NCBI RefSeq assembly: GCF_000143415.4 | Contig: NW_003314394.1 | Span: 1-64,000 of the forward strand | Source: Selaginella moellendorffii | Lineage: Eukaryota; Plantae; Lycopodiophyta | Reading direction: 5' to 3' | DNA length: 64,000 nucleotides | In this document: positions 1 to 54,514 of the stretch, in pieces | Position numbering within the stretch: position 1 is the stretch's first letter | Layout of the letters: every line of letters begins with the position of its first letter | Made by a program: the position numbers and the translations under genes | Notes under the pieces: model-generated | Seen by the model: the letters and a program-made list of their open reading frames with translations, nothing else | What the model was told of the DNA's origin: nothing | Databases searched by the model: none

Positions 1-3000
1 TCCTTGAGTACTTCATTGAGAGTCTACTCTCGACTATCTAAGTCGAAGCTTTTAGTCTAAATGTGTTACTCTAGTTTGGCTTCCATTTTAGCCACTACCA
101 CGTGGCACCCTTTTGGCTCCACTTTTGGGGCTCTGAGATTTGTGTCTCACAACTCCACCACCCATAGATGAAGTTCAATGTTCTCATCGAACGATAAACC
201 ATTTTATAAAGTAACACCAATATGTATTACCCTTTCCATCTTTGACACTTAGCTAATATTCGTCAATAGTTTGACACCAAGGCTCACCATGCCTTATCCA
301 TCCTCTAAGGAGCATAGCCTTTCCAACTTAAAGACTCATTCAATCACTTATAGTGGTTCTCTCCTTTTATTGGTTTAGTTCTTGCTAAACCTATTACAGA
401 CACCTTCTTTATTTGAATCTCACTACTCATTCTTGAGTAGTTTCAGTTTCCATCGATATAACCTTTGCACTTTGGAATTTTTAATTTTGACTTCTCGAAG
501 TCAACTTTTTAGGTGCCCCTGTCATTTTACATTGCATATATTGTGCAAACTCCACTTCCCCATCCTAAGAAGTTCTCTACTTAAAAGCACTATCATCCTC
601 TTTTTTATTTCTTGCCACTTTTGGCACTAAGTTCTAGTTATCATAATTGGTGCTAAAGTTGTCTATGGCCTTATCATTTGGCTACCTTGCCAATCCCTCC
701 CTTGGAGCTTCCACTTTCGCCAAATCAGAGTAGTGTGGAATCCATCATTGGAAATATATTATCTTTCCCACAATCCGTTAGCATCCAATACTTTAGTGTT
801 CCTGGCCTAACTTTGCTCTTTGGATTTCTTCCTATGATTCCCATGGCTCTTTTCTTAGCCATTAGTCTTTTACTCTTATCTTTTGACTATTGCACTTAAC
901 AACATAGGATCATTACTTTCATTCTCAAGGTATTCTTTCGGTTCTATAACAAAAACTTTGCTTTGCCAAGTCTAAAGGGTGTTTACCCCTAATAAATCTC
1001 TTTAGCATTTTCAACTATAAGCTCTATCCATGGCTCAACTTTGTGACCCTCCTATGGTCTTTCTTAGAGACTACTCTCTTCGAACTTACTATGCTATTGC
1101 ATTGATATAGCTCATTTCCCTTAGGTGTTCTTCCCACTTGATCACCTTAACCAAGCCACACCATTATCAATAATTCAAATCAACACTTTGAATTAGAAAC
1201 TTTATTCCTTAATCTCACAAAAACTTTATCTTTGCTTAACTGTAAGATCACTTAGCGATCTATCTTTGACACCTTAACAGGTTTGCCAATAAGTACTAGG
1301 TCTTCCAGACTTTTGAGTTATTGACCATGACCCCGGGGGGCATCCCCCACACTTAGCAATGCACCCAAGCTGGCCCTCCTAGCCAAGGGTCTATAGCAAT
1401 TGAGATCCATCTCATTCACTATGTCCTTGGTGCCACTTGCACCAAAGTGTTCAAGTTAGATATGTTATATTTTCACACTAAGTAATCTAATTGTGCATCA
1501 CGACTTTGGGGCATCCCCTCCTTGGCGGTGTGCCCAAGCCAACCTTTGTACTAAGAGTCCATGACCACCAAAAAATGAGTGTCTCATATTCTAAACCGTT
1601 CCCATGACTTTAATATGGCACATTCTGCCATCAATAAGATACCCACTGTTCTCATATTTGAATCTTATGATCTTCCCCATCCTTCATAAGGTACAAGACA
1701 CCTCAGTCCAAATGCTTCCACTAGTCCCTTGGGACCATTCTTTGACTCCACTTGAGTTATCCAACTTTTTAGACTTTGCTAATTTGATGACCCATAAGGT
1801 CCTAGCCTAATACTTGATTATTTTTCGTTCCTTATGGGTTACTTTTGCCCCTTAGGACTATCTATCCATATGATGAGAATACTTATTCATCATTTCAATA
1901 CACCCTAAATTCCTTGGGTTTGTTCCAACATTTATAAAATGTAGCCCTAGCTACCATTTCAAGGACTTGTGTCCTTATCCGTATTTGACCTTCCACAGTC
2001 ATTAATTCTAGTCTTAAATTCATGAGTACCAACCTCAACTATATAAGGATAATCTTATGACTCCTTTATTGTTTTAAAATCTTTATCTTTCTTGTGATCC
2101 CAACTATAGTTATTTACCACAACTACATTAGCTAGTTTGCTAAGTCAAATGCTCATCTAGATCACATCCTCAACTCTCTAAAGAAAACTTTATACTATTC
2201 CCAAGATCCCAAAGTTATTCCTTTATTGGCCCTTTTCTATCCACCACTTTGCCTACAAGTTCACACATGAACTATAGTGGAAAGTTATGCTCTCCTAACT
2301 TACTACTCCTCAAGGATAGGCCCACTCATAGAACCTTCTAATGCCAACACAAGTGATGATATACTTAAGTATCAATAAAAGTTGGACTAAGGAATAGCTT
2401 CGATACTAAATTGTAAGCGACTAAATTTTTCATTCTACTTTAGTCACTTAACCACACCCCCAACCATTTGGAGGAGTCTCACTTACAACCTCCATAAGTC
2501 ATATTCCAAACTTGGGGCTTGGCATCCATGCCACTCAACCTTTGCACTTGGTCCAAGTGCTCCACATGTCCCATCCCATAACCGCCACTCAAAGGTACCA
2601 CTAACATATTAGCCCGTTACGCTAAGGCTATGCCTATTCACCTTTGTCACACCGGTGATTCAACACCACCGACATCACAGTCCTGTCTTTCAAAGACTGG
2701 GCCATCCATCTATGAGTAATCATCCAAGATCCACTCCTTAGCATCCTTAGAACACCTGTAGACATAAAAAATAACACTTCTCCAATATCCCTTTTTCAAT
2801 CCCTACCAAGTCCCTATCTATCCATGGTCGTGTTTGCCAACATTGCCACTAGGTCAAGGCCCACCGGTCCGACCACTAAGTTCCATTGTCCTTTGGGACT
2901 TCCTCACTACGTAACCATATCTTTGGTCACTACACCAGAGGACTGCCCCTTTTCCTTTTCATAGTTTGGGACTTTGGGACAACATTTCGAAACACCATAA

Positions 3001-4210
3001 CCCTACACGAGCCTCATGGGTACTCTCCCCACCTTCTACCTTTAGGTGCTTTAGCCATGGGGCTAGAATAAGGTTCTATTGAGCCACACCAGGTATCCAA
3101 GTAGGTAGTGCCACCCATGCTTGGACTGGGAGTATTAGCCATTCGATCTCCCAGGGAACTAAAGCTGGCTCTTGAACACTTCATCACGCTACCCCGCTTG
3201 TTTGTCCATATTCACTCTAGCTTTGGACTCCTCAGTGGATATAATATCACCTAACACCTAGGTATAGCCTTCCTGGGTCACACTAGCCTTTCCTGACTAA
3301 ATTGGCTCCACTAAGTCCAACCCCCACACTCTCCCTACTATACTTTTGGAACCCCCTGCAGGCCCCCTCTGAGGGACAATTGCTTTGGGCTTTCACTCAA
3401 CAGCCTGTATTAGTATTTGGACTCGGACTCAGACTCGGATTCGGACTCGGATTCGGACTCGAACTTAGACTAAGACTCGGTCTCGGTCTTGGACTCGGAC
3501 TCGGACTTGGACTCGATCTTGGTCTCCATCTCAAACTCCATCTCAGGTCCATCTTAGACTCCATCTCGAACTCCATCTCAAATCCATTTCGAACTCCATC
3601 TTGGGTCCATCTCGAACTCAGTCTCAGTCTTGGTCTACATCTCGGACTTCATCTCGGATCCATCTCAGACTTCATCTCGGATCTATCTTAGAATCCATCT
3701 CGGACTCTATCTTGGGTCCATCTCAGACTCCATCTCAGATCCTCCACGAGTGAAAGCCTGTATTAGTATTTGGACTCGAACTCGGACTCGAACTCAGACT
3801 TGGTCTCAGTCTCGGACTTAGACTCGGACTCGGACTCAGTCTTGGTCTCCATCTCGGACTCCATCTTGATTCCATCTCGGACTCCATCTCGGGTTCATCT
3901 CAGACTTTATCTTGAACTCCATCTCAGGTCTATCTCAAACTCCATCTCGAACTCCATCTCGGGTCCATCTCAGATTCCATCTCGGGTCCATCTCAGATTC
4001 CATCTCGGGTCCATCTCGGACTCTATCTTTGGTCCATCTCAGACTCCATCTCGGGTCCTCCATGTGTCATATGTTGGTCCTCTTATGTCCCTTTTCTAGA
4101 GACTCACTTACTGCTTGCTTCGTGCTCATTCCTGACTCGACTTTCCAAGTCGAAGCTTTTAGTCCAAATGTGTTACTCTCATTTGGCTTCCACTTTAGCC
4201 ACTACCACAT
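1..4210 (-). mobile_element. Internally deleted, degenerate Ty3/gypsy-family LTR element: 5' LTR ~2412-4210, ~2.3 kb internal region, 3' LTR 1-151 running off the window
   Basis: On the - strand the LTR ends ...CTTACA at 2412, followed by a PBS-like TAGTATCGAAGC (2397-2408). PPT GGGTGGTGGAG (153-163) matches that of the 26494-33838 element. 30-100 matches ~4140-4207. 1331-1400 and 1505-1570 match that element's 3' UTR (33271-33350). No intact ORFs. Confidence 0.75.
3418..4055. repeat. Hexamer/12-mer tandem array (GGACTC / CCATCTCGGACT) inside an LTR
   Basis: Directly visible. The reverse-complement type of array (GAGACC/GAGTCC/GAGATC) occurs in the LTRs at ~26575-26757, 33495-33708 and 42527-42790. 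Confidence 0.9.
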
Positions 4211-5335: not shown

Positions 5336-7863
5336 GAAACTTACTAAATATAAAATGTCCTTTCAATTTGGACATAGGACGAACACCATGGTTCAAGAGG
5401 CATTAGAAAGCTCTTATCCAGCCACATGCCAAATATATGTGGATCTTCTCCTTGCTTTATTCTGCAGCACACTCACAAAAGGTGGCAATCTTCCTTGGGT
5501 ACTACTAGTAGCAACCAACTCCTTGGCATCTTTATTTAAGGACTAGGCTTCTTGGGAGTTCACAGCCCTCTCTACAGTAGCCAATAAGATTTTAGCCAAG
5601 CTTGGAGCTAGGGATAATGTGAAAACAACAAGTGGTGATTTGCCAAATGCAAGTGACAACATTGTTGGTGTTCCAGTCATGACTTTCAATGATCAAGAGA
5701 CATCAGCCTCCACACTCATGAACAATCTCTTTCAACCACACAACTCAAATAACTTGGATCACATAATTCCCAACTAATGGTGTTTACCCCTATTGAGAAG
5801 ATCTTGAATTTCTAGAGCCCTTTATTTGAACCTCATATCCACCATGTTGTATGTTCTTATCTACTAACTTTGCCTTTCCAGGACACACTCATAGATTTAT
5901 GTACTTTATCATGGATCCCTACAAGATCAATAGACAACACTCTTACTCAATTCACTATCACAACTCCAATTTGTTTTCCTCACTAGCAAGGAGCCTCACT
6001 CAAGGATCTATGACACTCACATCACCCATTTGGATATGGCATATGCTAGCTATGGAGCAATAGTGAGTGCTCCAACCTCTTTTCTTAACTTTGGCCACAC
6101 TTAAAAGCTTTTGCATAACTTCCTTGCCACTGAAATGAGTCTTCTTTAGTTGGCAATAGCTTTATATCATCCTAGAGTCACCACTCCAATACTTCAATAT
6201 GGCATCACACAATCACATGCCTTTGGGTTTCTTCATGTTTCAGCTCTGATTCTCTACATGGTGTCCTCAAGCATGGAGCCTTCCCAAACACCCTACATAT
6301 CACAGAGATCCAGCATAACTATAGCTATAAATTATATACAATTTCATAGTAGCTTTCTCAAGTACATAAACAACTAAAGAAAACAACTCAAGATATAATT
6401 CATAAAAGTTCAAATATAAAGAGAAATAGCCTATCCCTTAAAAGAGCTCATCCATTTTCCAATCTTAAGATATTTAGAGTTAAGCCCAAGAAGTTCAAAT
6501 TCAAGAGTTTGTAATTTGCCCATCAGACTTCTACAAGCACTTCAGATGACTTTCTCCTCTTTAGCAACATCAACATTCCCCATTTAGGAACAATCAGCAC
6601 AACCCAACATTATGCTCTAAGTTCTCATACCAATGTCTTTTGCAACTTCAGATTCTCTTGACATCACAAGCTTTAGACCATCTTGCTTGACTTTAACTTG
6701 ATTGTCCATGGAATCCAAAGCTTTCTCTAGGATTCCTTTTGCCCTTTAGAGGCGAGCTTCTTCACAACAACACTCAAGAAAAACTCAACTCACCACCTTC
6801 TTCACTAGTGCTCCTTTCTTTTCTTCTTTGTTTTCAGTTGCTTTTCATGTTCTTCTAGGTAATTTTCTCTTGCAAACACAATCTCAAGCTTGGATTCCAG
6901 CCTTGGATGCCCTTAACTCCTCTTTTCTAGGAGCTCATTTATTTCTTGGCTATTTCCCCTTTATTTCCAAGTTCTTGTCTTTATCACTTTTAACAACACA
7001 TCCTCCAATTTTATTTCCATCCACTTACATTTACAAAATATCACTCTATTCACTCTCAAAATCATCATCACAAATATCTGATCTCTATTTTTATCAATAC
7101 AATGCAGATATAATCAAGTTTTTTGAATGTCAGAAACAAAAGATATAACTTGAACCATCACAGCATGAGACTTATGGCAAATCTAAAGACATTCCAACTT
7201 TTTTTTTAGTCAATTGGGCTTGCATAGAAAAGGCATCTAGACATTCATTAGTGGAGTAGACAACTCTCCTGCCACTGATTCCTCATCACCTGGTCGTGAT
7301 GTTTGTTATGCAATTAGGGTCAAGCAGAGGACGTCTTCCATGTTGCCAAGCTTTTGTCTTGCTGTGAGATTAGTTCCCCTGGCTTGGCAAAGTTATATCT
7401 CTCCTTGTGACTCCGGCCACTAGTACTGCAAAACACCTTGCAAACTAGAGATTAGAGTGCAGAAGGCGACTTGCTGATCTTGCTCAAAAGAGACCCAGCT
7501 CACCACGATCCAAACTCTCATCATCAGATTATAGAAAAAATATTATTCCACTTCCACCAAAGTATAACCTCTTAAGAGCGTCCTGCCAAGTTGCCCTGGA
7601 GCTGCTCACATCAGTGAAATCTCTGCTTTGCTGACCCTCATTCCAGCTCTGGAGCTCTATGTAGCATCCTGCGACATGATCGGCTAGCTAGTGGGATCAA
7701 TCCGTGGCTGACAATCTCCGCGATGTTAAGGAGCCGATTGAGCGAGGATGAACCTTGTTCCGCTTGAGTCTATCTCAAGCAGTGAGGCAAAGTAAGAACC
7801 GATTTTGTTTTATTTCTTTCTTCCGGCTTTTTTTCTTGATTTTGATCTTGGGGGCTCTCTCGT

Positions 7864-8425
7864 TTGATCTTGTACCTCATTGTAGGTGCTATGCGATTCT
7901 CACTTCGTTACACATGTTCGAGAGCTCCGAAATCGAAAAAAGCTCTTCTGTATGATCCAAAGATCTCGTCCAAGGCGGCCATCCGGCAGAAGCATCGTTC
8001 CTCGAGTCCATGCGGCTCATGTTCCCCAACAAGCAAAAGCTTCGTGCACAAGCAGCGGCAGAAGAGTGTCCGTGATACTTTATACAAGAAAAAGAGAGGC
8101 TTGGCAGACGACAAAGGCGTGCTTGATGGCATCGCCAACGGTGGGAGCCATATCAACCTTGGAGAAGACGACTTGGACATGCTAGTTGCTCTGGACGATC
8201 ATGCTTTCTCTCAGATGGTCGATCTTCTTGCTACAGGAGGGATTGAAGCTGTCATTGGAGCTTTCCCTGTGAATCTGAGCTGGAACCGCAGCAGGATACC
8301 AAGGACGAAGTCTCGCTTGAGAGTTTACCCCCGTGATTCATCTCAAACTAAGCTTGACAAACCAAATGGAGCTGCCGAAAATGACGTGAGTGAAGATGCC
8401 AAGAAAGAGCTTCGTTCAAGACCAG
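7864..8425 (+). CDS. Open reading frame of unknown function, truncated by assembly gap
   Basis: ~187 uninterrupted codons in a GC-richer, undecayed island. No recognisable motif. Confidence 0.3.
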
Positions 8426-8910
8426 NNNNNNNNNNNNNNNNNNNNNNNNNNNNNNNNNNNNNNNNNNNNNNNNNNNNNNNNNNNNNNNNNNNNNNNNNNN
8501 NNNNNNNNNNNNNNNNNNNNNNNNNNNNNNNNNNNNNNNNNNNNNNNNNNNNNNNNNNNNNNNNNNNNNNNNNNNNNNNNNNNNNNNNNNNNNNNNNNNN
8601 NNNNNNNNNNNNNNNNNNNNNNNNNNNNNNNNNNNNNNNNNNNNNNNNNNNNNNNNNNNNNNNNNNNNNNNNNNNNNNNNNNNNNNNNNNNNNNNNNNNN
8701 NNNNNNNNNNNNNNNNNNNNNNNNNNNNNNNNNNNNNNNNNNNNNNNNNNNNNNNNNNNNNNNNNNNNNNNNNNNNNNNNNNNNNNNNNNNNNNNNNNNN
8801 NNNNNNNNNNNNNNNNNNNNNNNNNNNNNNNNNNNNNNNNNNNNNNNNNNNNNNNNNNNNNNNNNNNNNNNNNNNNNNNNNNNNNNNNNNNNNNNNNNNN
8901 NNNNNNNNNN
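8426..8910. other. Assembly gap (N run)
   Basis: N bases. Confidence 1.
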
Positions 8911-9079
8911 ATGTTTTCCCATTGTTGGCTATATCAGCACCACAAAAAGTATTGGCAGCTTGTTGGTAATTAGACACTGTAAGCCCTGCTGGCATGGAAC
9001 CTCCATAACAATCAGCACTATAAATTACACCAAAGTACAAAAGGTTAAGAAACATAAGTGCAATAATTACTCTATCCAT
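8911..9079 (-). CDS. Small secreted Cys-containing protein, 5' part (3' end lost in gap)
   Basis: ATG at 9079. MDRVIIALMFLNLLYFGVIYSA is a signal-peptide-like hydrophobic leader, followed by DCYGGSMPAGLTVSNYQQAANTFCGADIANNGKT. Confidence 0.6.
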
Positions 9080-9149
9080 TGTGATTGAAAAGATGTATTG
9101 CAATGTCAGGTTTTCTAGGCAGTTCTTTAATAGTTGATTCAAATGTGTT

Positions 9150-9395
9150 CTATTAGAGCACGCAAGTATTTGATATGATATGTGATAAGATCAATGACTT
9201 TTACTACTAACCCTACCCCATTAGTTGATTGAATGTTTTCTATTAGGACACGCAAGTATTTGATAAGATTCATGATAAGATCAATGACTTTTACTTCTAA
9301 TCCTAAGGACACCCAAGAATTTGATAAGATTCATGATAAGATCAATGACTTAATCATAAGGACACCCAAGTATTTGATAAGATATGTTTATGATA
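9150..9395. repeat. Degenerate tandem repeat, ~4 units of AGGACACSCAAGTATTTGATAAGATTCATGATAAGATCAATGACTT
   Basis: Units begin near 9155, 9245, 9306 and 9359, immediately upstream of the secreted-peptide gene. Confidence 0.8.
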
Positions 9396-10196
9396 AAATT
9401 TTATTTCTATCACTTTATTCAATTAATAGTTTATTTAAATGCGCATTATTAAAATAAATCAAATTTAGGATTTTAATATAAATTTTCTAAGTTATATTTA
9501 GTGTAATACAGAAATATTCAAAGCAATATTTCATGACAGTTTTAGACTGTAACCAAAGATAGCAGTATATAGAAGATCCACAGCATCTATAGTCTTAGGT
9601 GAGGCTTGGGGTCAAGTTGTACTGAGTCTTGTGGTGAGTGTCTAATGGAGTTAGCAAAGATCCAACAGGACATTTATTCAAAACTTGCACAAATAAAAAA
9701 AATCAAGAACAATTCATATGTTGAGGTAGCAATGGAAGACTTATTGTCATATCTTGTTTAGCCAAAAATCAAGGGTGTCTCTTGTGCAAGAAGTGATACT
9801 CCTTCTGGAATGTCCAAGAGTGAATTTGCAAGCCCTTATGTGTTTCTTACACAATTCTAACAGCCTGCTCTCACTTCGGTTTTGGCTTGTTATAAGCACA
9901 ATACAAGTTTGGTCTACTACTTTATACCTAGTGTGAGCTTTGTGTTAGTTTTATCCATGAGAAGGGATTTTGGTAGCTACGTAAATTAGTGGTGAAGGAG
10001 TAAATGAGTGAATGATAACTGACTTGGTCAGCCATTCATCCAATAGATTTGATCTTTTGTACCTTAGATAATATTATAAGAGTGTATGCCACTTTAGTAT
10101 AGAAATTGCCTGGTAGTTTGGCAATCTAACTACCATATCATCATAAATTCCAAGAATATCTATTAAATTTAATTTTGTGAGGTTTGTAAATATGTA

Positions 10197-10202
10197 TGTG
10201 TG

Positions 10203-10290
<88 letters not shown>
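10197..10290. repeat. Compound microsatellite (TG)n-(TA)n
   Basis: TG run 10197-10210, TA run 10213-10290. Confidence 0.97.
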
Positions 10291-10294
<4 letters not shown>

Positions 10295-11100
10295 TTATCC
10301 AGGTAATATACTAATTATAGGATTATAGCATATAGACTATTTAATCCATCCATTCTTGTATATAAGAAGGGGTTTACACCCCAATTAAGATATTTAATTC
10401 TCATATCCTAAACACTTACGTTGGTGGAAGTAAGGGGCATTGCAATTTATCGCTGAAGGGCAAAATTTTTACTATAGTGTTTAGGATTATGCTTTTATTT
10501 TTATTCTTTTCTTTTTCTTTTAGATTTAGATTTGTATTAGCTTTTTGTAAGATCTAAAATTTTACCTATTGCTATGTTTAAATTTACTCTTTTTTTTAAT
10601 CTTTATTACATTCCCTTCTTCTATCATGCCATACTATCATTGATCAAGGAATATATCACTTAAGGCTATTACTCCATTGAATCAAGTCTTTGGTGCTATA
10701 GGGTGTGATTATATTGGTGTTGCATTCATCTTTGATATATTGCCATCTCCAAATTTTGTGAGATATAATTACATAGCTTTTCTTGTTCTTAGTGTTTTGC
10801 CATCTCCTGTTAATGTGGAGCGTGTTCATGATATTGATTAAAGAGTTGTGAATAATGCAATTCAATCCTTGAAGAATGTTTAAGGATCGAGTTTATAGGA
10901 AGATAATGTTTACGAGTTTGAATAGAGTTTAAATTGTGATGAGGAGCTTAATTATTATAAAGATAGCTTTAAAGACAAATTAAAAATTTCATAAGGTAGG
11001 TATTAATCCTTCAATTTATCATTTGATCATTTCCTTTTACTTCTATTTGTTACAACTTTTTTTTATTTCTCGGTCTTTCTCAGTCTAAGCCACCTTCTCA

Positions 11101-11200
11101 NNNNNNNNNNNNNNNNNNNNNNNNNNNNNNNNNNNNNNNNNNNNNNNNNNNNNNNNNNNNNNNNNNNNNNNNNNNNNNNNNNNNNNNNNNNNNNNNNNNN
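11101..11200. other. Assembly gap (100 N)
   Basis: N bases. Confidence 1.
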
Positions 11201-11429
11201 TAATCATTTTGGGACTTTATGATTCTCATTCTCAATGTAGTGTTGAGTTGAGTGTTTTTTGTCCTCATACTAATTTAGATGTTAAGCATGTGCATAAAGT
11301 TAAGGATCTTGCTGTCGCAAATATAACTTCAAGTATCAAAAGTTACCTGTCGGCCAATTCTTACGGACACTCTTTCCTTATTGCCACGATGGCAGAAGGT
11401 CGGTATTGTTGAGACCTATTATTAGTCTC

Positions 11430-12090
11430 CGCCTAAGTTAGTTGAGAAATTGGTCTTCATGTGTGCACTTGACCAAATGAGTATAAAGATGGAATTCCTA
11501 AGTGCTATTAGTCAAACATACTTGACCTGGTTAGAGAAACTCATCCGTTGACTTACACTTGCTAGTGTTAGGAAGCCTAAAGTGTGTGTTTTTCAAGGAG
11601 GGGTGGCTGTGGGGGGTTCCAAATGTATAGTAGGGATAGTGGGTAGGTCGGGCATGGCTAACCAACTCGAGGCATAGTCTAGCTCCTGATTGCGTGCTTA
11701 TCTTTGTTCTACATCTAGCTTGGGTCTAAGCCCAAGCTCTACACCATATTAGCTAATGGAGTACCCATATCCTTGCGTTAAGCCACTAGTATGCCGAAAA
11801 AGCGCAAAACTCTGTTTGGCTCCGTTTTGCATGTTGGTCTTGGCATTGGGATATTGGTTGCTCTAGGACTGTTCCAAGTCACTCAGGACTCCTGTCCCTT
11901 TACTCCTTGGGCTGTATGCTTGGGAGTTGCTTCGTGGTCTAGTTTCATCACTCCTTGGCTCTAAGCTTGGGGGTTTGGCACCATTCCTTTGTTCAGTGGC
12001 CCAAGGCCCTGAACCTTGGGTTCCACACCACTATCCTATAGACACGTGGCACATGAAGGGTTTAGGTTCCATTTTGTGTTATCCTATGGT
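11430..12090 (+). mobile_element. LTR relic (same family as 21750-22615)
   Basis: Colinear similarity to 21750-21880 and 22130-22590. Contains the GGGGTTCCAAA-GTATAGTAGGGATAGTG motif shared by other LTRs in the window. Confidence 0.6.
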
Positions 12091-43285: not shown

Positions 43286-43771
43286 AAAATCTTGGAGACA
43301 GGTGGGATGAACCTCAGCAAATCATAGTAGCAAGGCTACTTTGCCACTTACAATACCCTGTCCCTTATTTAAGTCGTCTGCAAAGAATTTATCTCTGAAG
43401 CCGTTCAGTTTGTATTTACCGGTCCAACACAAGCGGCAAGGTCAACCGCAAGCACATGCACAGGTCCTCGGGGGTGCACGTGCCACCCCTTTCCAAGATC
43501 AAGTAACAACGCGTGAGGTAGATAGTGCCACATCTAGCACAGATTCTGACTTAGAGGTGTTCAGTCATAATCCCACGCATGGTAGCTTTGTGCCACTGGC
43601 TTTTCAACCAAGCGCAATGACCAATTGTGTGAATCAACGGTTCCTCTTGTATTAAGTTGAATTATTATTGTGACACAAGGCATCAGTAGGGTAAAACTAA
43701 ACTCATGACAGTCTAAACCCAGCTCAAGTTCCCTATTGGTGGGTGAACAATCCAACACTTGGTGAATTCTA

Positions 43772-43814
<43 letters not shown>

Positions 43815-43837
43815 AACATTGCTATGAACGCTTGGCT

Positions 43838-43869
<32 letters not shown>

Positions 43870-44242
43870 TTGACACCTCTAGCTTCAAACCCAGAAATAC
43901 TAAAGGATCAATAGGCCATGTTTTCACAGTTTGTATCCGTACTAAAGATCAAAATCAAATGAGCTTTTACCCTTCTATTCCACACGAGATTTCTATTCTC
44001 ATTGAGCTCATCTTAGAACACCTACATTATCTTTTAACAGATGTACCACCCCAGCCACTTGACAATGTCATCCGCCTAGATCAGCCAACAAGTTGCCCGC
44101 CTTAAAACTAGAAGAAGGGGCAAAGCCCTGTCTCCACCTCACAGAGTAAGTAAAATAACATTAAAAGTAGTGGTATTTCACTTGTGCTGAAACTCCCACT
44201 TATGCTACAGCTCTCAAGTCATTTCACAAAGTCAAACTAGAG
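43286..44242 (-). rRNA. 25S/28S LSU rRNA pseudogene, 3'-terminal ~960 nt
   Basis: Reverse complements of conserved LSU motifs: TTTAAGTCGTCTGCAAAG, GTTCCCTATTGGTGGGTGAACAATCCAACACTTGG, GAGCCGACATCGAAGGATCAAAAAGC, GCCAGTTATCCCTGTGGTAACTT. Many C>T/G>A changes. Confidence 0.96.
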
Positions 44243-45169
44243 GGACTAGAGGAGAGAATGAAAACCCTAGCAGCACAGTGCCTTCTCTCTGAGCACCCAC
44301 TTCTCTCATGCCCACGGCACCCAAGCACGCTCCTATCCTCGGCACCATGGATTTGCAGTTGAGCGCCTCGCTGTTCGGTGGGTTCTGGGCACATCCGGTA
44401 CACGCTTGGCGATCTCATTGGTGGAAGTGCCAGGATCCCGGTTCTTCCTAGCTCCCCCCCTGTCCGACGCAGTCACCACAAGCATGCTCTTGATCACTCT
44501 CTCCTTCGCCACTTTCATTGGATCTACACTGGGTCCCCCTGATTCAAGCTTGCTCCACCCAACAATTGGTCCATGTGGATCCATTTGGGTAGTGAAGGGA
44601 TCGTCTCAGGACCGATAGGATTGATGGCCGCACAGCCCAAAATCCTCTTCGCACACCTGCAAGGTTAAAAGAGGACTTCGGTGGGGAACCAGCGAGAGTT
44701 CCCCTCTCCTCCCCCCACACATCACAAAAAAAGAAGAAAACGCACCAAGCTGGATCAAGGGAAGGATGCTCCAAGCACTAAAAGGGGATAGAAGCACAAG
44801 AGAAGCAAATTGAGCATGTACTGCCACTTACCCTCTACCTCTTGAACATGAGCACCCTCAACAAGCACATCCAAAGGAGCTGGAGCAAAGAACATCCCCA
44901 AGCCACGAACATGCTTGGTTTCTTCCTTGCGCACCTCTTCATTTCAGCACCATGGTTGTGAACACGAAGTGTGGATGGATAAGCAACTCCCCCATCTCCT
45001 CACGCAGCAGAACGCAACGATATGGCCTTCGATCCAACATCCTATTGCCAATACGCTTCTCACCGAGCCATGAATCCAAGCGACAGAAGATCCCAGGGGG
45101 AGAACTCCATGCTGATCTAGCCACCCAAAAATCAGCTAACTTAGTAAATTGGCTGATGTGGTTGTGGTA

Positions 45170-46600
45170 AACAACTATTGTTACAATCACAATATAGATA
45201 AAGACTCCAAGACAATAAAGGAGTCTCAAGATTATCCTCATATAGTTGAGGATGGTGCTAATGAATTTGATATTAGAGTTAACAACTGTGGGAAGTCAAA
45301 TATAGATGAGGACATATATTCTTGAAATAGTAGCTTGGGCTACCTTTAATAAAAGTTTGAATAACTCAAGGAATTGGGGGGTGTATTTAAAGAATGAATT
45401 GGTGTTCTCATCATATGAAAAGATAGTTTTAAGAGGTGAAAATAGCCCACATAGAACAAAGGATAATCAAGTGTCAGAGTAATATTTGTAAAGGTGGTCT
45501 TTGTGAATATGATACAAATACAAGAAGTTGTATTCAAGTGTGATGGCATCTCAAAAAGTAGCCAAGAGGATAAAACTTTATATAATGATGGATTAGTGAA
45601 ATCCAAAAGCTAGATGTAGAGTCAAGGGATGGTCCCAAAGGCTTGGAAGGATTTTATTTGGACAAAAGTGTGTTGTACCTTACAAAGGACTAGGAAGAAC
45701 ATGAAATTTAAGTATGAGAACAATTGGTATTTTATTGATGGCAAAATGTGCCATACTAAAGTTGTGGAAAGGCATTCATGGAAGAAAACAACTTTGGTGA
45801 GGAGTTATATATGAACATTATTTTGAGTGTTAATCGATAATTTACCATTGTTTTGGAAAAAACTTAGATACAAGTGGGAAGTGTCGTAAAGGTAAGCTTA
45901 TAAAGCTAATGGTGTGAAAACACCAAATGTTCCAAGGTGTGATGTTTTGAGGTTGAGTTAGTTGGTTCATAAGAACCCCTTGCCAAATGAATCTCTATGG
46001 AAATGGGATGGGCATAGCCTAAGCTAGAAGGCATACAATTTGAGTGCATTACCCAAATAATGATGGAGGTGTGAAAGTATCAGTAATGAGTTGTACGACT
46101 TGATGATTATGAAGCAACTAAGCAAATGGTATGATATAATTAATTGGATTGGTAAAAGTTAACTTCCAGAGACTTTTTATTGGGATAAAGAGGTTAAATA
46201 TATCCCTTAGGGGATAAATTATTTATGTAGTGATGTAGTGAATCAATGTGAAATGCTCATTGTCAAAGAAGGTCATCATTAGGAAGTGGTGTTTAGTATC
46301 ATGAGGGCATTAGATAAGGCCCAAGGAATTAAGTCTTTAGCAAAAAAAATGGATAGGAGGTGTTATCTAACGTCTAAAGTTGTAAAGATAGGATAAGTCT
46401 GTTTATTCGAATTAGATAAAGCTAAAAAGATTTTTGGCAAAGCTAGTGACAGGCATACAAAGCCCATGAGTAACAATGTTAACTCTGAGCTTTATCCAAT
46501 TCTAATAGATAGACTTATTAGACTTGGCCAAGTGAGGAATCTCCATACAAACGGCAATGCAACTTGAGCACGAAATCCAAGGGATGGGCCATAGTCTAAT
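45170..46600 (+). mobile_element. AT-rich decayed gypsy RNase H/integrase-like relic nested in the LINE 5' region
   Basis: Abrupt compositional shift at both ends. KDNQVSE (GKDNQVAD-like, ~45460) and GFYLDKSVLY (~45650) remnants. Confidence 0.45.
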
Positions 46601-46911
46601 GGGCTCTGAAAGTAAGAAAAAGAGTCATAAAAGTAAAGTGAAAGAAAGGAAGAAAAAGAAGAGAAGAGGAATGCCTCACCGGATGAAGCGTTTAAGGTGA
46701 GAGTGGTTGTGAGCGTGTGGGAGCTCACATCCCTTAGCATCAACTAGCACATCCTTGCTGACGCCCCCCATCCCCCCCCCCCCCCCCCACTCTCCAATTT
46801 TCCCCCCAGCAAAATCTTCTTTCACTACAGTGCCTCCCTCCCCCCGCACCACTGCCCCTAGTCATTTTTTGGACACAGGAATCTTGCTTGTCCTCTTCGG
46901 CGCGGAGTCAA

Positions 46912-49045
46912 TGGAACATGCCAAGAACAAAGCACACATGTAAACGTGGGATCCTCATGGATGAGGAGGGACACTCGGCAGGGGACATGATCACTCATGC
47001 CCCTCTCACGGCGCACCCGGCGTACCCAGACACAATCCAGAACCTGATAGAGGACGAGGAACCACCTGAAGCAGTACCCGCCCCACGCTTGGCAACAAAG
47101 AACATGGGGATGAAGCTATCCATCAAGCTCAAACAACATCCCTTGCCACCACCAAAGCCTGATGCCCCCCTCGTGGAGAAGGAACCAGACACGGCGCAAC
47201 CAACAAGCAATCCAACTCCCTCCCCAGCATTTTTAGCGGACACTGTCAAAGTTCCAAGGAAAAAGCCAATGGCAAAGAACCTCAGAAAGCCAAAAGGAGG
47301 AACTGCCGCATCCTCATCCAGACAAGCCCCGGCCACGAGGTCCATAGCCACACCACCAATGGCCAAGGCCCCTCCCCTCCTCCTGGCACTGGAAGGCCTT
47401 AGCACCTATGGGGACGAAGGCGCTGACGAGACCCAAGGACAACCTTTGGACTCACACGCCCCCTCCCCAACGGGCAGCGACCTCATCCTGAACACGCAGC
47501 AGAGGGACCAAGTCATTCAGGCCCTGCTGGGAGAACAAAGCACCGACGGTGCACATCACGGCTCACAAACCCCAAAGGGATCCGCACAGCTCACTGCTCT
47601 AGTGCCACGCCTCTCCATTGGCACCAGCTCCGGTCCAACTCCTCCAACCATCCCGGTAGTCAAGCTCTCCCCTGGCCGGGACAGTCCATGACCAACGGAG
47701 CACGTACCAGCCTCATTGCCACAGCTTGCAAAAATGAAGGAATTAGAGGTGCTGTATCTGGGCTGGATGCGCGTGGAGGAACTACATGTTGAAGTTGACA
47801 AGGCAGCTTCCAACCGCTCCAATGCAGCGCCCACCCTGTCAAATGTCACGGTCCCAATTCCTGGGGAGATCTAAGTCGAAGCCAATGAGATCCTCATGGA
47901 ACTACAACAACGCCAAGTCCTCGAAGCCAAGACACTCGTCCTTGCGATCTTCAAAGGGGGCAAACCAGATCGGGAGCTAGCCATGCAGTGGTTGGACGAA
48001 TGTTTCCAGGAGGTAGGAGTTGCTTTTCGGGGCCGCTAGGTCACCTTTCTCAGCCGCAACTGTTACAGCATCGAAGTCTACACCGAGACAAATCACCACA
48101 CACTCATCACTAGACAACGAATCACACGGCCAACATACAAGTGCTTCTTCTACCGCTACCCGCTGGAAGTCAAAAGGAGACGATCCACCGGCCGACAATG
48201 GAACTAGACCTCATCATCGATGACCCCTCCGAAACCAACAACACCCCGGTGTTTCTGGCCATGATGGTTGAAGGGTTTGCGCAGTACCTGGGAAAAAAGG
48301 CCACTCAGGAGGAATCAGGTGGACAACTCATCCATGTCCTATTCATAGGTAAAGCTCCCATCTCCTACAAGATTCAGATGCTTGGCAAGGTCTACCTAGT
48401 CCACATTATGGACTCTCATACAACGCCCATGACCGCACCAGAGCCATCTGGACACGTTGAGAGCCGCAAGCGCAAATGAAGCCTGGCCACACGGACTGGA
48501 ACCTCGAGGAGACCACCCGGCCGAGACTAAGTGCACCACACCAGGCGTTCACAGGGCTGGAGAGCTTCCCCAATTGCTCCTCAAGATGGGGAGCCGATCC
48601 ACTAGCCCAACATTTGCCCTCTCCAACCCAACCTCAACTGGAACAGTTTCGGGAAGTGTACACCCAATCCCATGCCAAGGAATCTGCCTCCAGGTCCTCT
48701 CAGCGCCTACAGGTCCGTCTCTAGATGCATGTCAGCACCTCACGACCGAGGAGGTACCTGCCGATGTGGCATGGCTCGCCCATAGGGTACACTTTGCCAT
48801 CTTTCCATATGGCACGGAATCAGCTCCCGGACCAGGGCCTTCAAGCCTTTTTTCAGGCCTCTGAAATCATCAACGACATCCAGTACCGGGTGAAAGTGGA
48901 CAAATGCACCATAGTGGGCAGCAACATGCACCTGTATGCAGCCCTCCTCACCAAAAGTGGCATCATCCCTGTGAGAAGAAGGAGAGATCGCGAATTCTCG
49001 TGGGTGGAATGCAATCGAATCTCCATCAACAACGATAATGACTGA
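46912..49045 (+). pseudogene. LINE ORF1 (Pro/Ala/Ser-rich N-terminus), frameshifted
   Basis: Chain of same-strand ORFs (46888-47691, 48141-48479, 48457-48864, 48725-49045) ending in a TGA that overlaps the ORF2 start (ATG 49038). Standard L1 layout. Confidence 0.7.
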
Positions 49046-52000
49046 GCTACACACACTGTCATGGAATGTAGGAGGCATTAGTAGAGAGGGTGTGATATGG
49101 AGAGACAAGAAGGCAAAACTGAGACAGCACATTCGCCAACTAGAAGGAGTGTTTGGTTCTTGTGATTTCCTTTGCTTCCAGGAGCATCGAATAAAAGAAC
49201 ACCACCCGGTGTCCAAACTGTCCCTGGGAGAACACTACTGGAATCCAGCAAGGAATGGAAAAAGAGGAACATTGATCATTGCCAAAGGACCCTTACAATC
49301 CCTCTGTGACTCTCATCAGATCCTAATCCCAAGGCGTGCACATGTGGTCACCTTCAAGATACACATGTGAACCATAGGCCTATTGAACATATACGTCCTG
49401 GCCTCAAACTCAACCAGCCGTGCACACTTTCTCCGAAAGCTCACGCACAGACTCCCACTAGGAATTGACGACTGGTTACTCATAGGCGATCTCAACTTTG
49501 TTGATCACAAAGCAGATAAAGAGGGGGGAATTCTCACGGATCACTGTACCCGAGCAAAGCGGCTTGCATGGAACTCCCTTCTGCTACACCTCGGAACATG
49601 TGACGCATATGAAATCCCAAGCTTTGCCGTCCACGAACCCCAATTCACTTGGCAAGAGCGCCAGCGCAGGTGCATCCAAAGGCAACTGGACCGATTCTAC
49701 CTCACCATGGAACTGTGCATGCAAGGTGGAAAGCTGGACATAGATACCTCATACCCAGAATTCTCATACCACTGTCCCATACGACTCATACTCCCACTTC
49801 AGAGATCGCTAGGACCCAAGAAACCTAGTGCCATACCCAGGAAGTTCTTCATGGACCCAGCCAACAACCTCTGACTACAAGAAAAATGGAAAAATTACAA
49901 TGGGGACTTGCATTCCTTCACGTTGTGACAAGTTGAGGAAATCCGAGCCAAAATACAAAAGGATAGACGAGGAGTCTTCAACACATGCAGACAGTCCTGA
50001 ACTCAATCAACACAGGCCTCCAAGACAACCCCGATGACCCCTGGCTACAAGCCCAAAAGATCCAAGTCAAGCACCAACTTGACAAAATTGAAGCTGATAA
50101 AATGGAAGCATTCTTGCAAGCTGGACACATCCATTGGCATGCTAGCGAATTTTCACTTAACAGAGAGTTCTACCAGTCCATAAAACCCAAGATAATCTCA
50201 CCCCCAATGTTCGGACTCAAGGATGAACACGGCCACATTTTCACCGGCCTTGACGACATGCACGCCATGGCCGAACAATACTATACCCAGCTCTTCACTA
50301 CTGAACCCTAGAGCAAGGATCGCCAGACCAAATTGAATTAGGTGTTGGACCACATCCCACAGAAGTACACCCCGACTATGTGCTCCAAGCTCACTAAACC
50401 CTTCACAATAAGCGAACTGTGGGATGGCCTTCATGATCTCAAAGACAACAAGATGCCAAGAGAAGATGGCATGCCACCGGCGTTCAACAAAACCAACTGG
50501 GACTAGCTAGGTCCAGCAGTCCTCAAGATGTGGGAAGAGGTCCTGATCATTGGACAATGGCCACCCAGTGCCACTGATGGCCTCATAGTGCTCATCCCAA
50601 AAAAGGGAGGAGACATGTCCCTTCTTAAGAACTAGCGCCCCATATCAATGTTGAACACAATGTACAAGATCATAGCCAAGGCATTGGCCTCCCAAATCAA
50701 ACCATTGCTCCCAGAGACAATCAAGGAGACACAGAACGGGTTTGTGGATGACAGGCAGATCATGGACAACCTCCTAACACTCCTACTAGCACAAGAACAC
50801 ACAAAAGACAAATTAGGCCAAATTGCTATCATACTGCTGGAATTCGAAAAGGCCTACAACCGAGTTGATTGGACAGTCCTCCAAGCCATAATGAGCAAGA
50901 TAGGGATCCCACAGGCATACATCAGCTGGACAGCATCCCTATACCACTCTGCATCTAGCCACGTCACCATCAACGGCACTCTTGGCCAATCGTTTAAGCT
51001 TCAAAGATCTGTGTGCCAAGGCTGCCCCCTTGCCCCATACCTCTTCTTATTTGTGGCAGATGCACTGGCATACTACCTCGCCTGACCTGGAGGTCCAAAA
51101 GGGATGTCTCTCCCCAGCTGCCAAAAATCACTATAGGACATGACGCCAGCAACCAACGAGGATCTTCTCTCCTCAACATTCACGGACGACATAGGGATCA
51201 TAGCAGATGGCTCACCAGCAAATCTATCACGCCTCAAGCAAGACCTTGACCATTGCAACGAAGGAATGGGATCAAAAGTGAACTGGTCCAAATCCGTGGG
51301 ACTATGGCTACCATAGGACCAACCGCCCACATGGGGAACTAAACTAGGCTTCAAGTGGGTACATCTAGGAGAAACCACTCGGATACCTTGGTTTCCAGAT
51401 AGGGCACCACTATGATCTAGAACCCCAGAACCGCAAAGCTGTCACAAAACTACAGGACCAACTCAAATTCTGGGCAAGCAGGAAATTGTTCTTCTCAGCA
51501 CACTGCATTGTCGCTAACAACATCCTACTCGGTGCAATCTGGTTCCTTGCGTCCTACTAGAACCTAGACCAAAGGACAATCCGAGAGATGAACCAATTGA
51601 TCAGAACATATGTGTGGAAAGGTTCATCCTGTGTCTCACGAGGCAGTGCCAAAGTGGACTAGCACTCGGTCACACTACCCAAGCACAAAGGGGGATTGAA
51701 TACAATAGACATTGAGGAACAATGCAAGGCCCTTCTTTTCAAGATCTTCATGAGGATGCTCATGCCAGGAAACCTGGAGACTACTACTACGGCACCAGTT
51801 CCTCAAGATCCTCCCAAATCGCCAAGAACACATGTGGCAAGACTGGGCCCCAGACGAGCAGTGGATGTTCTCAGATGCCAAACTCAAAATGCTAGGTGCC
51901 AACACCTTCACCAGAAAACTCTTCAAGATCTGGTCCCAACTCAAATCTAGGCTGCAACGCAAGCCACCATGAACCAAGGAATAACTGGACTGCCAACCAA

Positions 52001-53350
52001 TCTTCCTCTACAAGTGGTTCCAAGCCGAAGGAAAAATGCTAGGTGCAACAGAAGATAGAGGCCTGGACCAAACCTACAGGGACCTACATGGGCATGCACA
52101 CCTTTGCAGAGGCTAATACCATGATCCAAGAACACTAGACAGCAAACAACTCTAACTGGATCAAAGCGTTCTATGGTCTGGCGATCTCAAAACATAGGAT
52201 GTGGAAGTTCCAAACAGCCTTTCACAAAGCTTGACGGGCGTGCCTCAAGACACTACAGATAACCGACATGTCAACTCATCGCTGGTGGAGACTAAACGAT
52301 ACGATTATATACACACTCCCAGGCAGGACATCTAGTCTGATCTTTGAAGTGGGACACGCGGGATGCCTCCTTCCCCTCATTACCCTTGAATATGAGGATC
52401 TCCTAGACATGTCTGCTGCTCAGCCTATCCGTGTCATCCAGATGGAGAAGAAAACTACATGTATAGACCCAACAATTCCAGAATGATAGTACTCCCGACT
52501 CTACTGGTTCTACCACCAAACCTTGGATGAATTACAATGGGACCCAGCAGAATGGGAGTGGAAGGACACATGCAAAGGGTTCTTTCAATATGAGACCAAG
52601 CTCGGCTAACAAATCTTCTGCCCCCCGGCCCACTCCACCTTCTTCCAAAAAGCAAGAGCTCAGCAGATCCTCCCCTTGAACCACTTACAATGTGTGAACA
52701 AGATTTGGAGAGGCCACTAGTCCGCCAAAAACCGCTATTTCATGTGGCTAGCCCAACAAGAACGACTACCCTCCCTTGCGGCAATACACCTCCTGAACAC
52801 AGCATGCAAGCTATGTGGCACAAAGGAGACTCAGCGACATATACTATGGGAATGCTTGCTTGGCAGCACAGGAAGTTTGGGAGGGAGCCATGGCAATCCT
52901 CAAACGGACCTCACAAGGAGGCGTGGCCATCACCTACGAATCTGCACTCTGGGCAGCTTTCTCCAAGGGAAAACTAAACGCCCGGACACCTGGAAATGGA
53001 AGCAAATCGAAAACCCTCACTTTGACCAACTCAACCGATCACGCACTCATCTCACACATCTCCATTAGGAACTCTTCGACGCTCTCAGGGGATGTACTTT
53101 AGCAGAGATCTGGAAGGCCCGCTACACCAGGACGTTCAATGATAAGAACCCCTCGGCTCGGGCAACAATCTCAAAGGTTTGGTCACGACTGATCGTCGCA
53201 CTAGCATCTAGAGTTGATACGCTAGTCAAAAGAGGACACAAAGGGAAGATTGCCTAGGAATGGGCTCTCTGGCAGTTCTTTAGACATGGAAATGAGGTTA
53301 GTGAAGACAAATGGACTTGGAAACCACCAATATGGCTTTGGCATCACTTG
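49038..53350 (+). pseudogene. LINE ORF2: APE endonuclease, reverse transcriptase, C-terminal zinc knuckle (multiple stops)
   Basis: LSWNVGG, CFQEH, NIYV, IGDLN, FTW...LDRFY, SYHCPI (APE). LIPKK, N*RPISMLN..YKIIAK, QNGFV..RQIMDN, EFEKAYNRVDW, QGCPLAPYLF, FTDD, RYLG (RT). CKLCGTKETQRHILWEC (CCHC). Confidence 0.95.
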
Positions 53351-53557
53351 TCTAGGAACGACAGAACGTGTACCTCCCCAAGTCCTTCAACCTCCCCATC
53401 TGGGACGTCAACCACATGGACCATGACGGATACGATCTTGAGCTTCAATTTGTCCTCAGCCCCCTCACCACTCCCCTCTCTGCTCTTTTCCAGTTTTGAG
53501 CTTATCAAAACTGGACTTTATGGTTTTATAGAGAATAAATAAATAAAAACCCGGTTG

Positions 53558-53719
53558 ACAAAGTTGGACTAGAGTCAAGCTCAATAGGGTCTTCTTTCCC
53601 CGCTAATTCTTCCAAGCCCATTCCCTTGGCTGTGGTTTCACTAGATAGTAGATAGGGACTGTGGGAATCTCATTAATCCATTCATGCGCATCATTAATTA
53701 GATGATGAGGCATTTGGCA

Positions 53720-53755
<36 letters not shown>

Positions 53756-53759
53756 TGTG
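53558..53759 (-). rRNA. 25S/28S LSU rRNA pseudogene, upstream continuation (~200 nt) containing the empty R2/R1 target region
   Basis: GACTAGAGTCAAGCTCAA.AGGGTCTTCTTTCCCCGCT...GGCATTTGGC.ACCTTAAGAGAGTCATAGTTACTCCCGCCGTTTACC. Continues exactly from the left-hand fragment after the TSD. Confidence 0.96.
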
Positions 53760-53764
53760 GTGGA

Positions 53765-53950
53765 CACTGGAGATTCTTCATCAACACCTACCTCCGATGC
53801 AATTATGATCAGTTCTTTATATATGGCAGTTTGATTTATCGGAACAATCTCCTCTACATCCCTGCTGGCACCCAAGGCTCCTCATTCTGCAATCTTGTCA
53901 TGACACCCTAGTAGCAGGTCATTTTGGTACACACAAGACCATGGAATAAC
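53765..53950 (+). mobile_element. Ty3/gypsy integrase zinc-finger fragment
   Basis: LIYRNNLLYIPAG..RLLILQSCHDTLVAGHFGTHKT. Confidence 0.8.
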
Positions 53951-53978
53951 CATCCTGTTAGCTTGAACAATCACCTAA

Positions 53979-54051
53979 CACTGATGCTAGGGCATTGAAC
54001 CCAGGTCACCTACATGACAAGCAGGAAGACTAACCACTATACTACATTGAT
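53979..54051 (-). tRNA. tRNA-Asp(GTC) pseudogene
   Basis: Reverse complement TCAATGTAGTATAGTGGTTAGTCTTCCTGCTTGTCATGTAGGTGACCTGGGTTCAATGCCCTAGCATCAG matches plant tRNA-Asp with transition decay. Confidence 0.85.
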
Positions 54052-54232
54052 AGTCAACCATGTGGAGGTTGACCAAGAATATTCACATGTGTCAATATAG
54101 AGTTTTATTTCACAATATAATACTTTGTGTGACCCATCATCAAATAAGTTCCACCCTTGCTTAGGAAGTGCTATTTGAGAAGTGGGAGAACTTGTTTCCA
54201 AACAAAAAGGATTGTCCTTCTCTTGTTTGATT

Positions 54233-54442: not shown

Positions 54443-54514
54443 TGAACCTGATGCAAATTGAAAGCGCAACCTTTTGATCTTGAGTCAAACACGCTACCAT
54501 TGCGCCACGGATCC
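54443..54514 (-). tRNA. tRNA-Trp-derived pseudogene (anticodon CCA mutated to CAA, B-box damaged)
   Basis: Reverse complement GGATCCGTGGCGCAATGGTAGCGTGTTTGACTCAAGATCAAAAGGTTGCGCTTTCAATTTGCATCAGGTTCA, 72 nt, matches plant tRNA-Trp. Confidence 0.88.

Follow-up and report, generated by a model that had tools for sequence, protein, structure and literature searches.

Retrotransposons that insert at a fixed position in ribosomal DNA (rDNA) are a classic model of a parasite that persists harmlessly in a multicopy gene, and to our knowledge they have so far been documented essentially in animals. The R1 elements of arthropods are LINEs with an APE-type endonuclease and are specific for the 28S gene. 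R2 has a single open reading frame (ORF), in which a restriction-like endonuclease lies C-terminal to the reverse transcriptase (RT); it inserts in the sense orientation and is co-transcribed by Pol I. In the L1 superfamily, elements of the animal Tx1 group (Tx1L, Keno, Mutsu, Kibi, Koshi and Dewa) have come to target multicopy RNA genes or repeats, namely U2, 5S, tRNA and microsatellites (see also PMC4640811).

Here we describe a LINE that lies within a 26S rRNA gene fragment of the lycophyte Selaginella moellendorffii, in a stretch of 64,000 nucleotides (contig NW_003314394.1, positions 1 to 64,000; hereafter, the window). Like R1, it is a non-LTR element with APE and RT domains. Its insertion, apparently through target-primed reverse transcription, is at a fixed point in the large-subunit (LSU) rRNA gene, as is that of R1, and the two sites fall within one conserved region downstream of the R2 site; each element leaves a short fixed duplication, and each seems to depend on base pairing of its RNA 3′ end with the target. 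It differs from R1 in that its relatives are plant L1 elements, its site is further downstream, it lies antisense, it resides in a land plant and it is leaky in its specificity. It shares with R2 the host gene and the conserved LSU rRNA region, but it has an APE-type endonuclease upstream of the RT and lies antisense, and the R2 site itself is unoccupied. The Tx1 group resembles it in combining an L1-superfamily APE and insertion into multicopy genes with the lack of a simple dependence on poly(A), whereas those hosts are animals, their targets are other sequences and the Selaginella element is nearest to streptophyte L1. Dispersed plant L1 elements, the closest sequence relatives, have the same order of APE, RT and Cys/His knuckle (zf-RVT), but the Selaginella family has a fixed, conserved terminus that is not poly(A) and recurs at one 26S position. 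On balance, we favour the view that an L1-clade family of Selaginella, of which the window element is an old and now dead copy, integrates preferentially, but not exclusively, at one position of the 26S gene, in antisense orientation.

The insertion and its host 26S fragment

Rfam searches of the window identified eukaryotic LSU rRNA on the minus strand at 43287-43678, 43695-44252 and 53666-53836, corresponding to model positions 3006-3399, 2412-2984 and 2131-2334, respectively. The 3′ part of the fragment (43287..44242, minus strand; model about 2412-3399; 536 and 188 bits) is decayed, with many transitions on direct reading, including changes in the sarcin-ricin loop. The 5′ part (53558..53836, minus strand; model about 2131-2411, from direct reading and the Rfam match at 53666-53836) is where the rDNA ends. 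This host rDNA is an orphan, antisense and 5′-truncated so that it begins at about model position 2131; neither 18S nor 5.8S was found in the window with Rfam, and the surroundings are decayed transposons. The R1 and R2 sites in the 5′ part are both empty, and direct reading through the R2 site (53720/53721), which an earlier note on this DNA had described as unoccupied, is uninterrupted. The insertion lies 146-163 nt downstream of the R2 site. The unit was orphaned either before the insertion or afterwards, and C-to-T transitions would since have eroded the host rDNA and the element together.

The earlier note had also proposed that a LINE interrupts the LSU rRNA in antisense between two copies of a 17-mer, and the junctions bear this out. 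On direct reading, rRNA identity ends at 44242 and restarts at 53558, with the element on the plus strand and the rRNA on the minus strand. Pattern search located exactly two instances of the 17-mer in the window, both on the plus strand, which form the left (44226..44242) and right (53558..53574) copies of a 17-bp target-site duplication; 100 shuffles gave none. It is native rRNA sequence on each side of the element. The two copies mismatch at three of 17 positions, and all three changes are transitions relative to the undecayed form found in a second genomic copy, L003 (two G-to-A in the left copy and one C-to-T in the right). At the 5′ junction, an extra 9-mer (44243..44251, plus strand; direct reading) repeats the last nine letters of the target in undecayed form, and the Rfam rRNA alignment runs across it as far as 44252.

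Structure, decay and affinity of the element

With its nested repeats, the degenerate L1-clade LINE is 9,315 nt long (44243..53557, plus strand). The duplication bounds it on both sides, and it carries the domains described below. It is a fossil: the ORF list contains no intact ORF in the element, and ORF2 is in many pieces across all three frames. The APE, RT and Cys/His knuckle previously reported between the 17-mer copies were all recovered on the plus strand, at 48975-49367, 50648-51085 and about 52805-52855. The frame-broken endonuclease region of ORF2 (48975..49874, plus strand) matched Pfam Exo_endo_phos (E 3.5e-6 to 6e-6) and aligns to another Selaginella copy, L004, from 49370; from that position through the 3′ terminus, the element aligns with S. 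moellendorffii copies. The longest open piece holds the RT core (50636..51085, plus strand; RVT_1, E 1.2e-15). The C terminus of ORF2 (52721..53102, plus strand) includes the zinc knuckle (zf-RVT, E 0.01), which aligns to Selaginella proteins and scores better in L003 (E 1.8e-9), whose ORF ends at a position corresponding to about 53100 of the window.

The description of the element as having two ORFs stood for ORF2, whose domains were found, but no recognisable ORF1 domain lies upstream, and the second ORF is only presumed. A proline-rich ORF of 267 amino acids (46888..47691, plus strand; ORF list) is a candidate ORF1 remnant; in this heavily decayed copy, a Pfam search of the open pieces across 46762-48975, this ORF included, returned no domains. 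Upstream of it, the 5′ part of the element contains about 1.6 kb of unrelated repeats (45139..46752, plus strand) with matches elsewhere in the window, in L003 and in L004: 45139-46479 matches window positions 1599-2145 on the minus strand and L003 17216-18599, and 46519-46752 matches L004 4389-4636 at 85%. These repeats are probably nested insertions, and the LINE 3′ terminus was not found within them.

The domain order (Exo_endo_phos followed by RVT_1 on the same strand and then a C-terminal zf-RVT) is the L1-type set that had been claimed for this element. Among solved structures, the best relative of its RT is human L1 ORF2p (E 2e-20), ahead of R2 (1e-13), and the nearest database proteins are streptophyte L1-type proteins from Closterium, Chara, ferns and angiosperms. 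A search of a word-indexed database with the RT found no close family member. Judged by this ranking of similarities rather than by a formal tree, the element belongs to the plant L1 clade.

Alignment between subfamilies placed the end of the 3′ UTR (53103..53557, plus strand) at a fixed terminus of the family. The earlier note had read an A-rich 3′ end as the footprint of target-primed reverse transcription; the footprint is real, but the end is not poly(A) and is instead a terminus common to the relatives. Identity between subfamilies is 75-82% over the last 80 nt of the 3′ UTR, compared with 46-51% in its middle. Two candidate hairpins (53490-53514 and 53516-53533) fall within these conserved last ~80 nt; covariation lends them weak support, with 94% of cells paired and 2 double changes, and only in the window copy does the fold reach a significant z-score. 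A metagenome scan with the terminus gave no match.

Related copies and their insertion sites

We took five related 3′ ends from the public S. moellendorffii assembly via gene models, regardless of rDNA; such a sample under-represents rDNA arrays that are unassembled or unannotated. One of them, L003 (GL377636.1), has the same terminus as the window copy and abuts the same 26S target. Past its terminus come a 15-mer and then a 16-mer of the target in tandem, with 9 nt between them, and beyond these target copies lie antisense LSU and 5.8S rDNA. The locus is rearranged: about 1 kb of LSU is missing beside the target copies, and the 5′ flank of the element is not rDNA. The filler after the second target copy (67-105 nt) showed no significant similarity to the 5′ end of the window element. 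Orientation relative to the rRNA is antisense in both the window and L003.

L003 belongs to a diverged subfamily, so its presence at the same target in the same orientation makes a chance match very unlikely. It bears directly on the possibility that a non-specific LINE landed by chance in orphan rDNA and that the likeness of L003 is a coincidence or an artefact of assembly or rearrangement. The host rDNA is indeed a truncated orphan among decayed transposons, and specificity cannot be demonstrated from one copy alone. However, the window element and L003, which are independent, terminate at one and the same nucleotide of the 17-mer and share their orientation; under random insertion, the probability of such a coincidence is roughly the reciprocal of the genome size. 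The duplication is also clean, its copies differing by transitions only. We regard chance insertion, already disfavoured by L003, as very unlikely.

The separation of the two subfamilies is deep. The window copy and the L003 subfamily have 70% DNA identity, with a ts/tv of 1.2 and saturated silent sites, and the RT protein of the window copy is 82% identical to that of L004. The RT comparison between subfamilies gave a pS of 0.69 and a dN/dS of 0.06. The low dN/dS, together with 70% identity in DNA and 82% in RT protein, suggests that the lineages diverged as working elements while keeping the terminus and the target; the same 26S site is used in both the window and L003 subfamilies.

Use of this site is not exclusive. 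The rDNA site is occupied at two of the six 3′ ends examined (the window copy, which was picked for being there, and L003), and four of the five copies sampled via gene models are at non-rDNA sites. This qualifies the earlier suggestion of a sequence-specific family, which L003 supports. In all four copies outside rDNA, the opening 4-6 letters of the rDNA target recur at the start of the flank. [A/G]CAA starts all six 3′ junctions, and CAAAG directly follows the terminus in five. Because the four flanks share only these first letters of the target, the specificity would be leaky or partly dependent on annealing. No rDNA was found near L001, a Selaginella LINE that is more distantly related, or near L002, a LINE of Closterium; neither is informative about the window family. 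The length of the target-site duplication is variable, ranging between about 13-16 and about 50 nt.

One alternative is that this is an ordinary dispersed L1 that needs its RNA 3′ end to match the nicked DNA over only 3-6 nt, with the rDNA cases reflecting high copy number, open chromatin or better survival instead of an evolved recognition of 26S. The four copies outside rDNA, which have ACAA or CAAAG alone in common with the target, and the variability of the duplications would fit such an element. However, a genome of about 200 Mb should contain a 5-6-nt motif at hundreds of thousands of equivalent sites, and we roughly estimate the probability of finding one rDNA case among five sampled copies under a short-motif requirement at 0.01-0.05. 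Nor would it account for the target being present twice in tandem at L003, or for a second, deeply diverged subfamily at the identical nucleotide. We therefore consider a dispersed element with a short-match requirement unlikely.

It is also conceivable that the 26S letters were carried by the element RNA itself, through 3′ read-through or transduction from a source copy resident in rDNA, in which case L003 would not be an independent integration into rDNA. The target pieces at L003 are short (15 and 16 nt), lie 9 nt apart and are not followed by contiguous 26S sequence, and at L004 and L006 the letters ACA precede the duplicated target letters, as if copied from RNA. Against this, L003 adjoins antisense LSU and 5.8S rDNA in the orientation expected of an insertion, the window 17-mer is native rRNA on both sides of the element, and read-through from an rDNA source would itself require a source copy at the same site. 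Transduction of this kind seems to us quite improbable. The family probably homes to this 26S position, and the best reading of the copies together is a preference that has been long kept but is leaky.

Implications and a possible route of integration

We found no plant 26S-specific LINE described in the literature that we searched, and a table of transposable elements in rDNA in a 2024 review contains no plant 26S-specific element of L1 type (PMC10946416). It is possible, and we put this forward only tentatively, that the animal R elements have a true counterpart among plants in S. moellendorffii: a lineage of the L1 clade in which homing to one previously unused 26S site evolved independently, and which inserts in antisense under its own promoter, has been maintained for very long (with silent sites saturated between subfamilies), stacks head to tail and may mobilise non-coding passengers. 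Such a lineage would be the first LINE of APE type with rDNA specificity to be described in land plants. If a plant L1 lineage does have a 26S site of its own, this would represent convergent rDNA homing in a different clade and kingdom, and its antisense orientation would demand another expression strategy. The value of the window fossil is as an old, independent witness to use of the same site by a diverged subfamily. Animal R2 proteins now serve as tools for inserting transgenes into plant rDNA (PMC13580325), a field to which a native plant rDNA-targeting element would be of interest.

The junctions suggest how integration may proceed. The APE endonuclease of ORF2 would nick the rRNA-sense strand just past ...CTTTGT, and the nicked DNA end could then anneal to the letters with which the element RNA ends, ...ACAAAG, priming reverse transcription. 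These last letters may be either encoded by the element or read through from a source copy resident in rDNA. Cleavage of the second strand 16-17 nt away would produce the duplication. At L004, two copies lie head to tail at a single non-rDNA site that resembles the start of the target. Since the element is antisense to the rRNA, it would have to use its own promoter instead of Pol I read-through. A Telo-box-like sequence, AAACCCTAG, was read directly 20 nt inside the 5′ end of the element (44262..44270, plus strand) and is a possible promoter motif.

LINE inside an antisense fragment of 26S rDNA

Rfam, pattern search and direct reading confirmed the overall observation of the earlier note, a LINE inside LSU rDNA with a 17-mer on both sides. 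In the whole window, Rfam detected rDNA in only three segments, all eukaryotic LSU rRNA on the - strand, at 43287–43678 (model 3006–3399), 43695–44252 (model 2412–2984) and 53666–53836 (model 2131–2334); 18S and 5.8S were absent. On direct reading, LSU identity ends at 44242 and restarts at 53558, exactly where the break had been placed. The 17-mer occurs exactly twice in the window (44226–44242 and 53558–53574; 0 in 100 shuffles), and the element, flanked left and right by native 26S, is bounded by this 17-bp duplication. There are 3 mismatches between the two copies over the 17 positions. With the undecayed form in a Selaginella locus (L003, GL377636.1) as reference, G has become A twice in the left copy and C has become T once in the right copy. 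At the 5' junction there is an extra 9-mer, a repeat of the target's end, with AAACCCTAG 10 nt further on.

The rDNA that hosts the element is orphaned and dead: it starts at about model position 2131, has neither 18S nor 5.8S in the window and, on direct reading against the known consensus, carries transitions even in its sarcin–ricin loop. The R2 site reads uninterrupted at 53720/53721, in agreement with the claim that it is empty, and thus places the insertion 146–163 nt downstream of it, the same distance as previously claimed. The arthropod R1 target region (53640–53660) is likewise uninterrupted on direct reading. Just past the truncated end of the fragment sit two tRNA-like sequences on the - strand, Asp-GTC at 53978–54052 and Leu-CAA at 54443–54514 (ARAGORN; Rfam 30.6 and 43.9 bits), which may represent either tRNA genes or the heads of SINEs derived from tRNA.

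Domains, decay and clade of the element

Between the 17-mers lies a LINE of 9,315 nt (44243–53557, + strand) with three domains in order, all on the + strand: Exo_endo_phos (Pfam, 48975–49367), RVT_1 (Pfam, 50648–51085, E 1.2e-15) and a zf-RVT Cys/His knuckle at about 52805–52855 (Pfam and a match to Selaginella proteins). The earlier note had described a two-ORF element with APE, RT and knuckle. All three domains were thus recovered, but the upstream ORF (46888–47691) has no domain recognisable by Pfam, so the two-ORF structure is just presumed. As for the A-rich 3' end that the note had also reported, the element does not end in poly(A), and its terminus is common to five relatives (see below). 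The copy is decayed, with ORF2 in many pieces across all three frames and a longest ORF of 267 aa. Positions 45139–46752 consist of unrelated repeats, which recur at other places in the window as well as at Selaginella loci. A 1.9-kb block with these repeats lies between the two copies of a 15-nt direct repeat (14/15 match; 44858–44872 and 46740–46754), which may be the duplication from a nested insertion, although a match of such a size could arise by chance.

Among solved relatives of the RT, human L1 ORF2p comes closest, with R2 behind, and a comparison with 1.8 billion representative proteins gave streptophyte sequences as the nearest (Closterium, Chara, Adiantum, Selaginella and angiosperms). 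On the basis of these similarities, we assign the element to the plant L1 clade. A C-terminal ORF2 piece matches Selaginella moellendorffii gene models at 86–88% identity, and other transposon families are common to the window and S. moellendorffii loci (75–88% identity). Consistent with the claim that no 25S-specific APE-type LINE is well characterised in land plants, neither full-text literature searches nor the table of rDNA transposable elements in a 2024 review (PMC10946416) gave a description of a plant 26S-specific L1-type LINE.

Two lineages with a conserved 3' terminus

We sampled relatives via four gene models, which led to four loci (L003–L006; public assembly GCA_000143415.2) jointly containing five 5'-truncated LINE copies. 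These are mutually 90–92% identical, and nearly every difference is a transition. By contrast, the window copy is 70% identical to L004 (689 transitions and 575 transversions), yet the RT proteins retain 82% identity (pS 0.69, dN/dS 0.06). This pattern of divergence indicates that the window copy is a member of a second, long-separated lineage, and that both lineages were functional while diverging. In an alignment of LINE 3' ends, the window copy shares its terminus with all five relatives. Within the 3' UTR, identity between the lineages is 75–82% over the last 80 nt and 46–51% in the middle, and the terminal block holds two candidate hairpins with weak covariation support.

A probable, leaky preference for one 26S site

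Past the terminus in L003 come, in order, a 15-mer of the 26S target, 9 nt, a 16-mer of the target again and ~67 nt of filler, beyond which lie LSU in antisense (from model position 1352 to 24) and 5.8S. This rDNA is itself interrupted by a 2-kb insertion at about model position 1172 (L003 11268–13322), and the 5' side of the LINE adjoins a DNA transposon carrying a DUF7869 ORF (5872–8940). Rfam detected no rDNA in L004–L006. L004 has two head-to-tail copies, each followed by ACAAAGGG and non-rDNA sequence, with a third target copy upstream; L005 has a duplication of about 50 bp starting ACAACACGG; and L006 has a 13–16 bp duplication whose 3' side reads ACAAAGGG....

The earlier note had proposed an rDNA-specific family and a tabulation of the relatives' 3' junctions. 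Of the six 3' ends, two, belonging to lineages that diverged deeply, share both their 26S nucleotide and their orientation, whereas the other four are at non-rDNA sites. Strict 26S specificity is therefore not supported. Chance insertion into rDNA is excluded for practical purposes, because the L003 copy ends at the same target. The flank begins [A/G]CAA at 6/6 junctions and has CAAAG at 5/6, and the four off-target copies have just the target's start in common with it. This fits a mechanism in which the nicked strand (...CTTTGT) would anneal to the final nucleotides of the element's RNA, priming reverse transcription. A model with this motif only predicts well under 1% of insertions at the rDNA site. 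Three observations argue for a real preference: the 1/5 rDNA hits among copies sampled blind to rDNA, the target present in tandem in L003 and the second lineage's use of that site. The junction sample is, however, small and biased against rDNA arrays, which are seldom assembled or annotated. The earlier note's interpretation is thus partly supported: the element in the window is a fossil from a plant L1 lineage that has probably kept, over a long time, a leaky preference for a single 26S position.

In the L004 stack (6988–11800), the non-rDNA target CAAAGGG..TAAAT is present three times, and the first stacked copy is truncated at its 5' end where an inverted repeat (6975–7015) lies. The unusually long duplication around the 5'-truncated L005 copy (8970–9045 and 10996–11050) implies a very distant second-strand cut.
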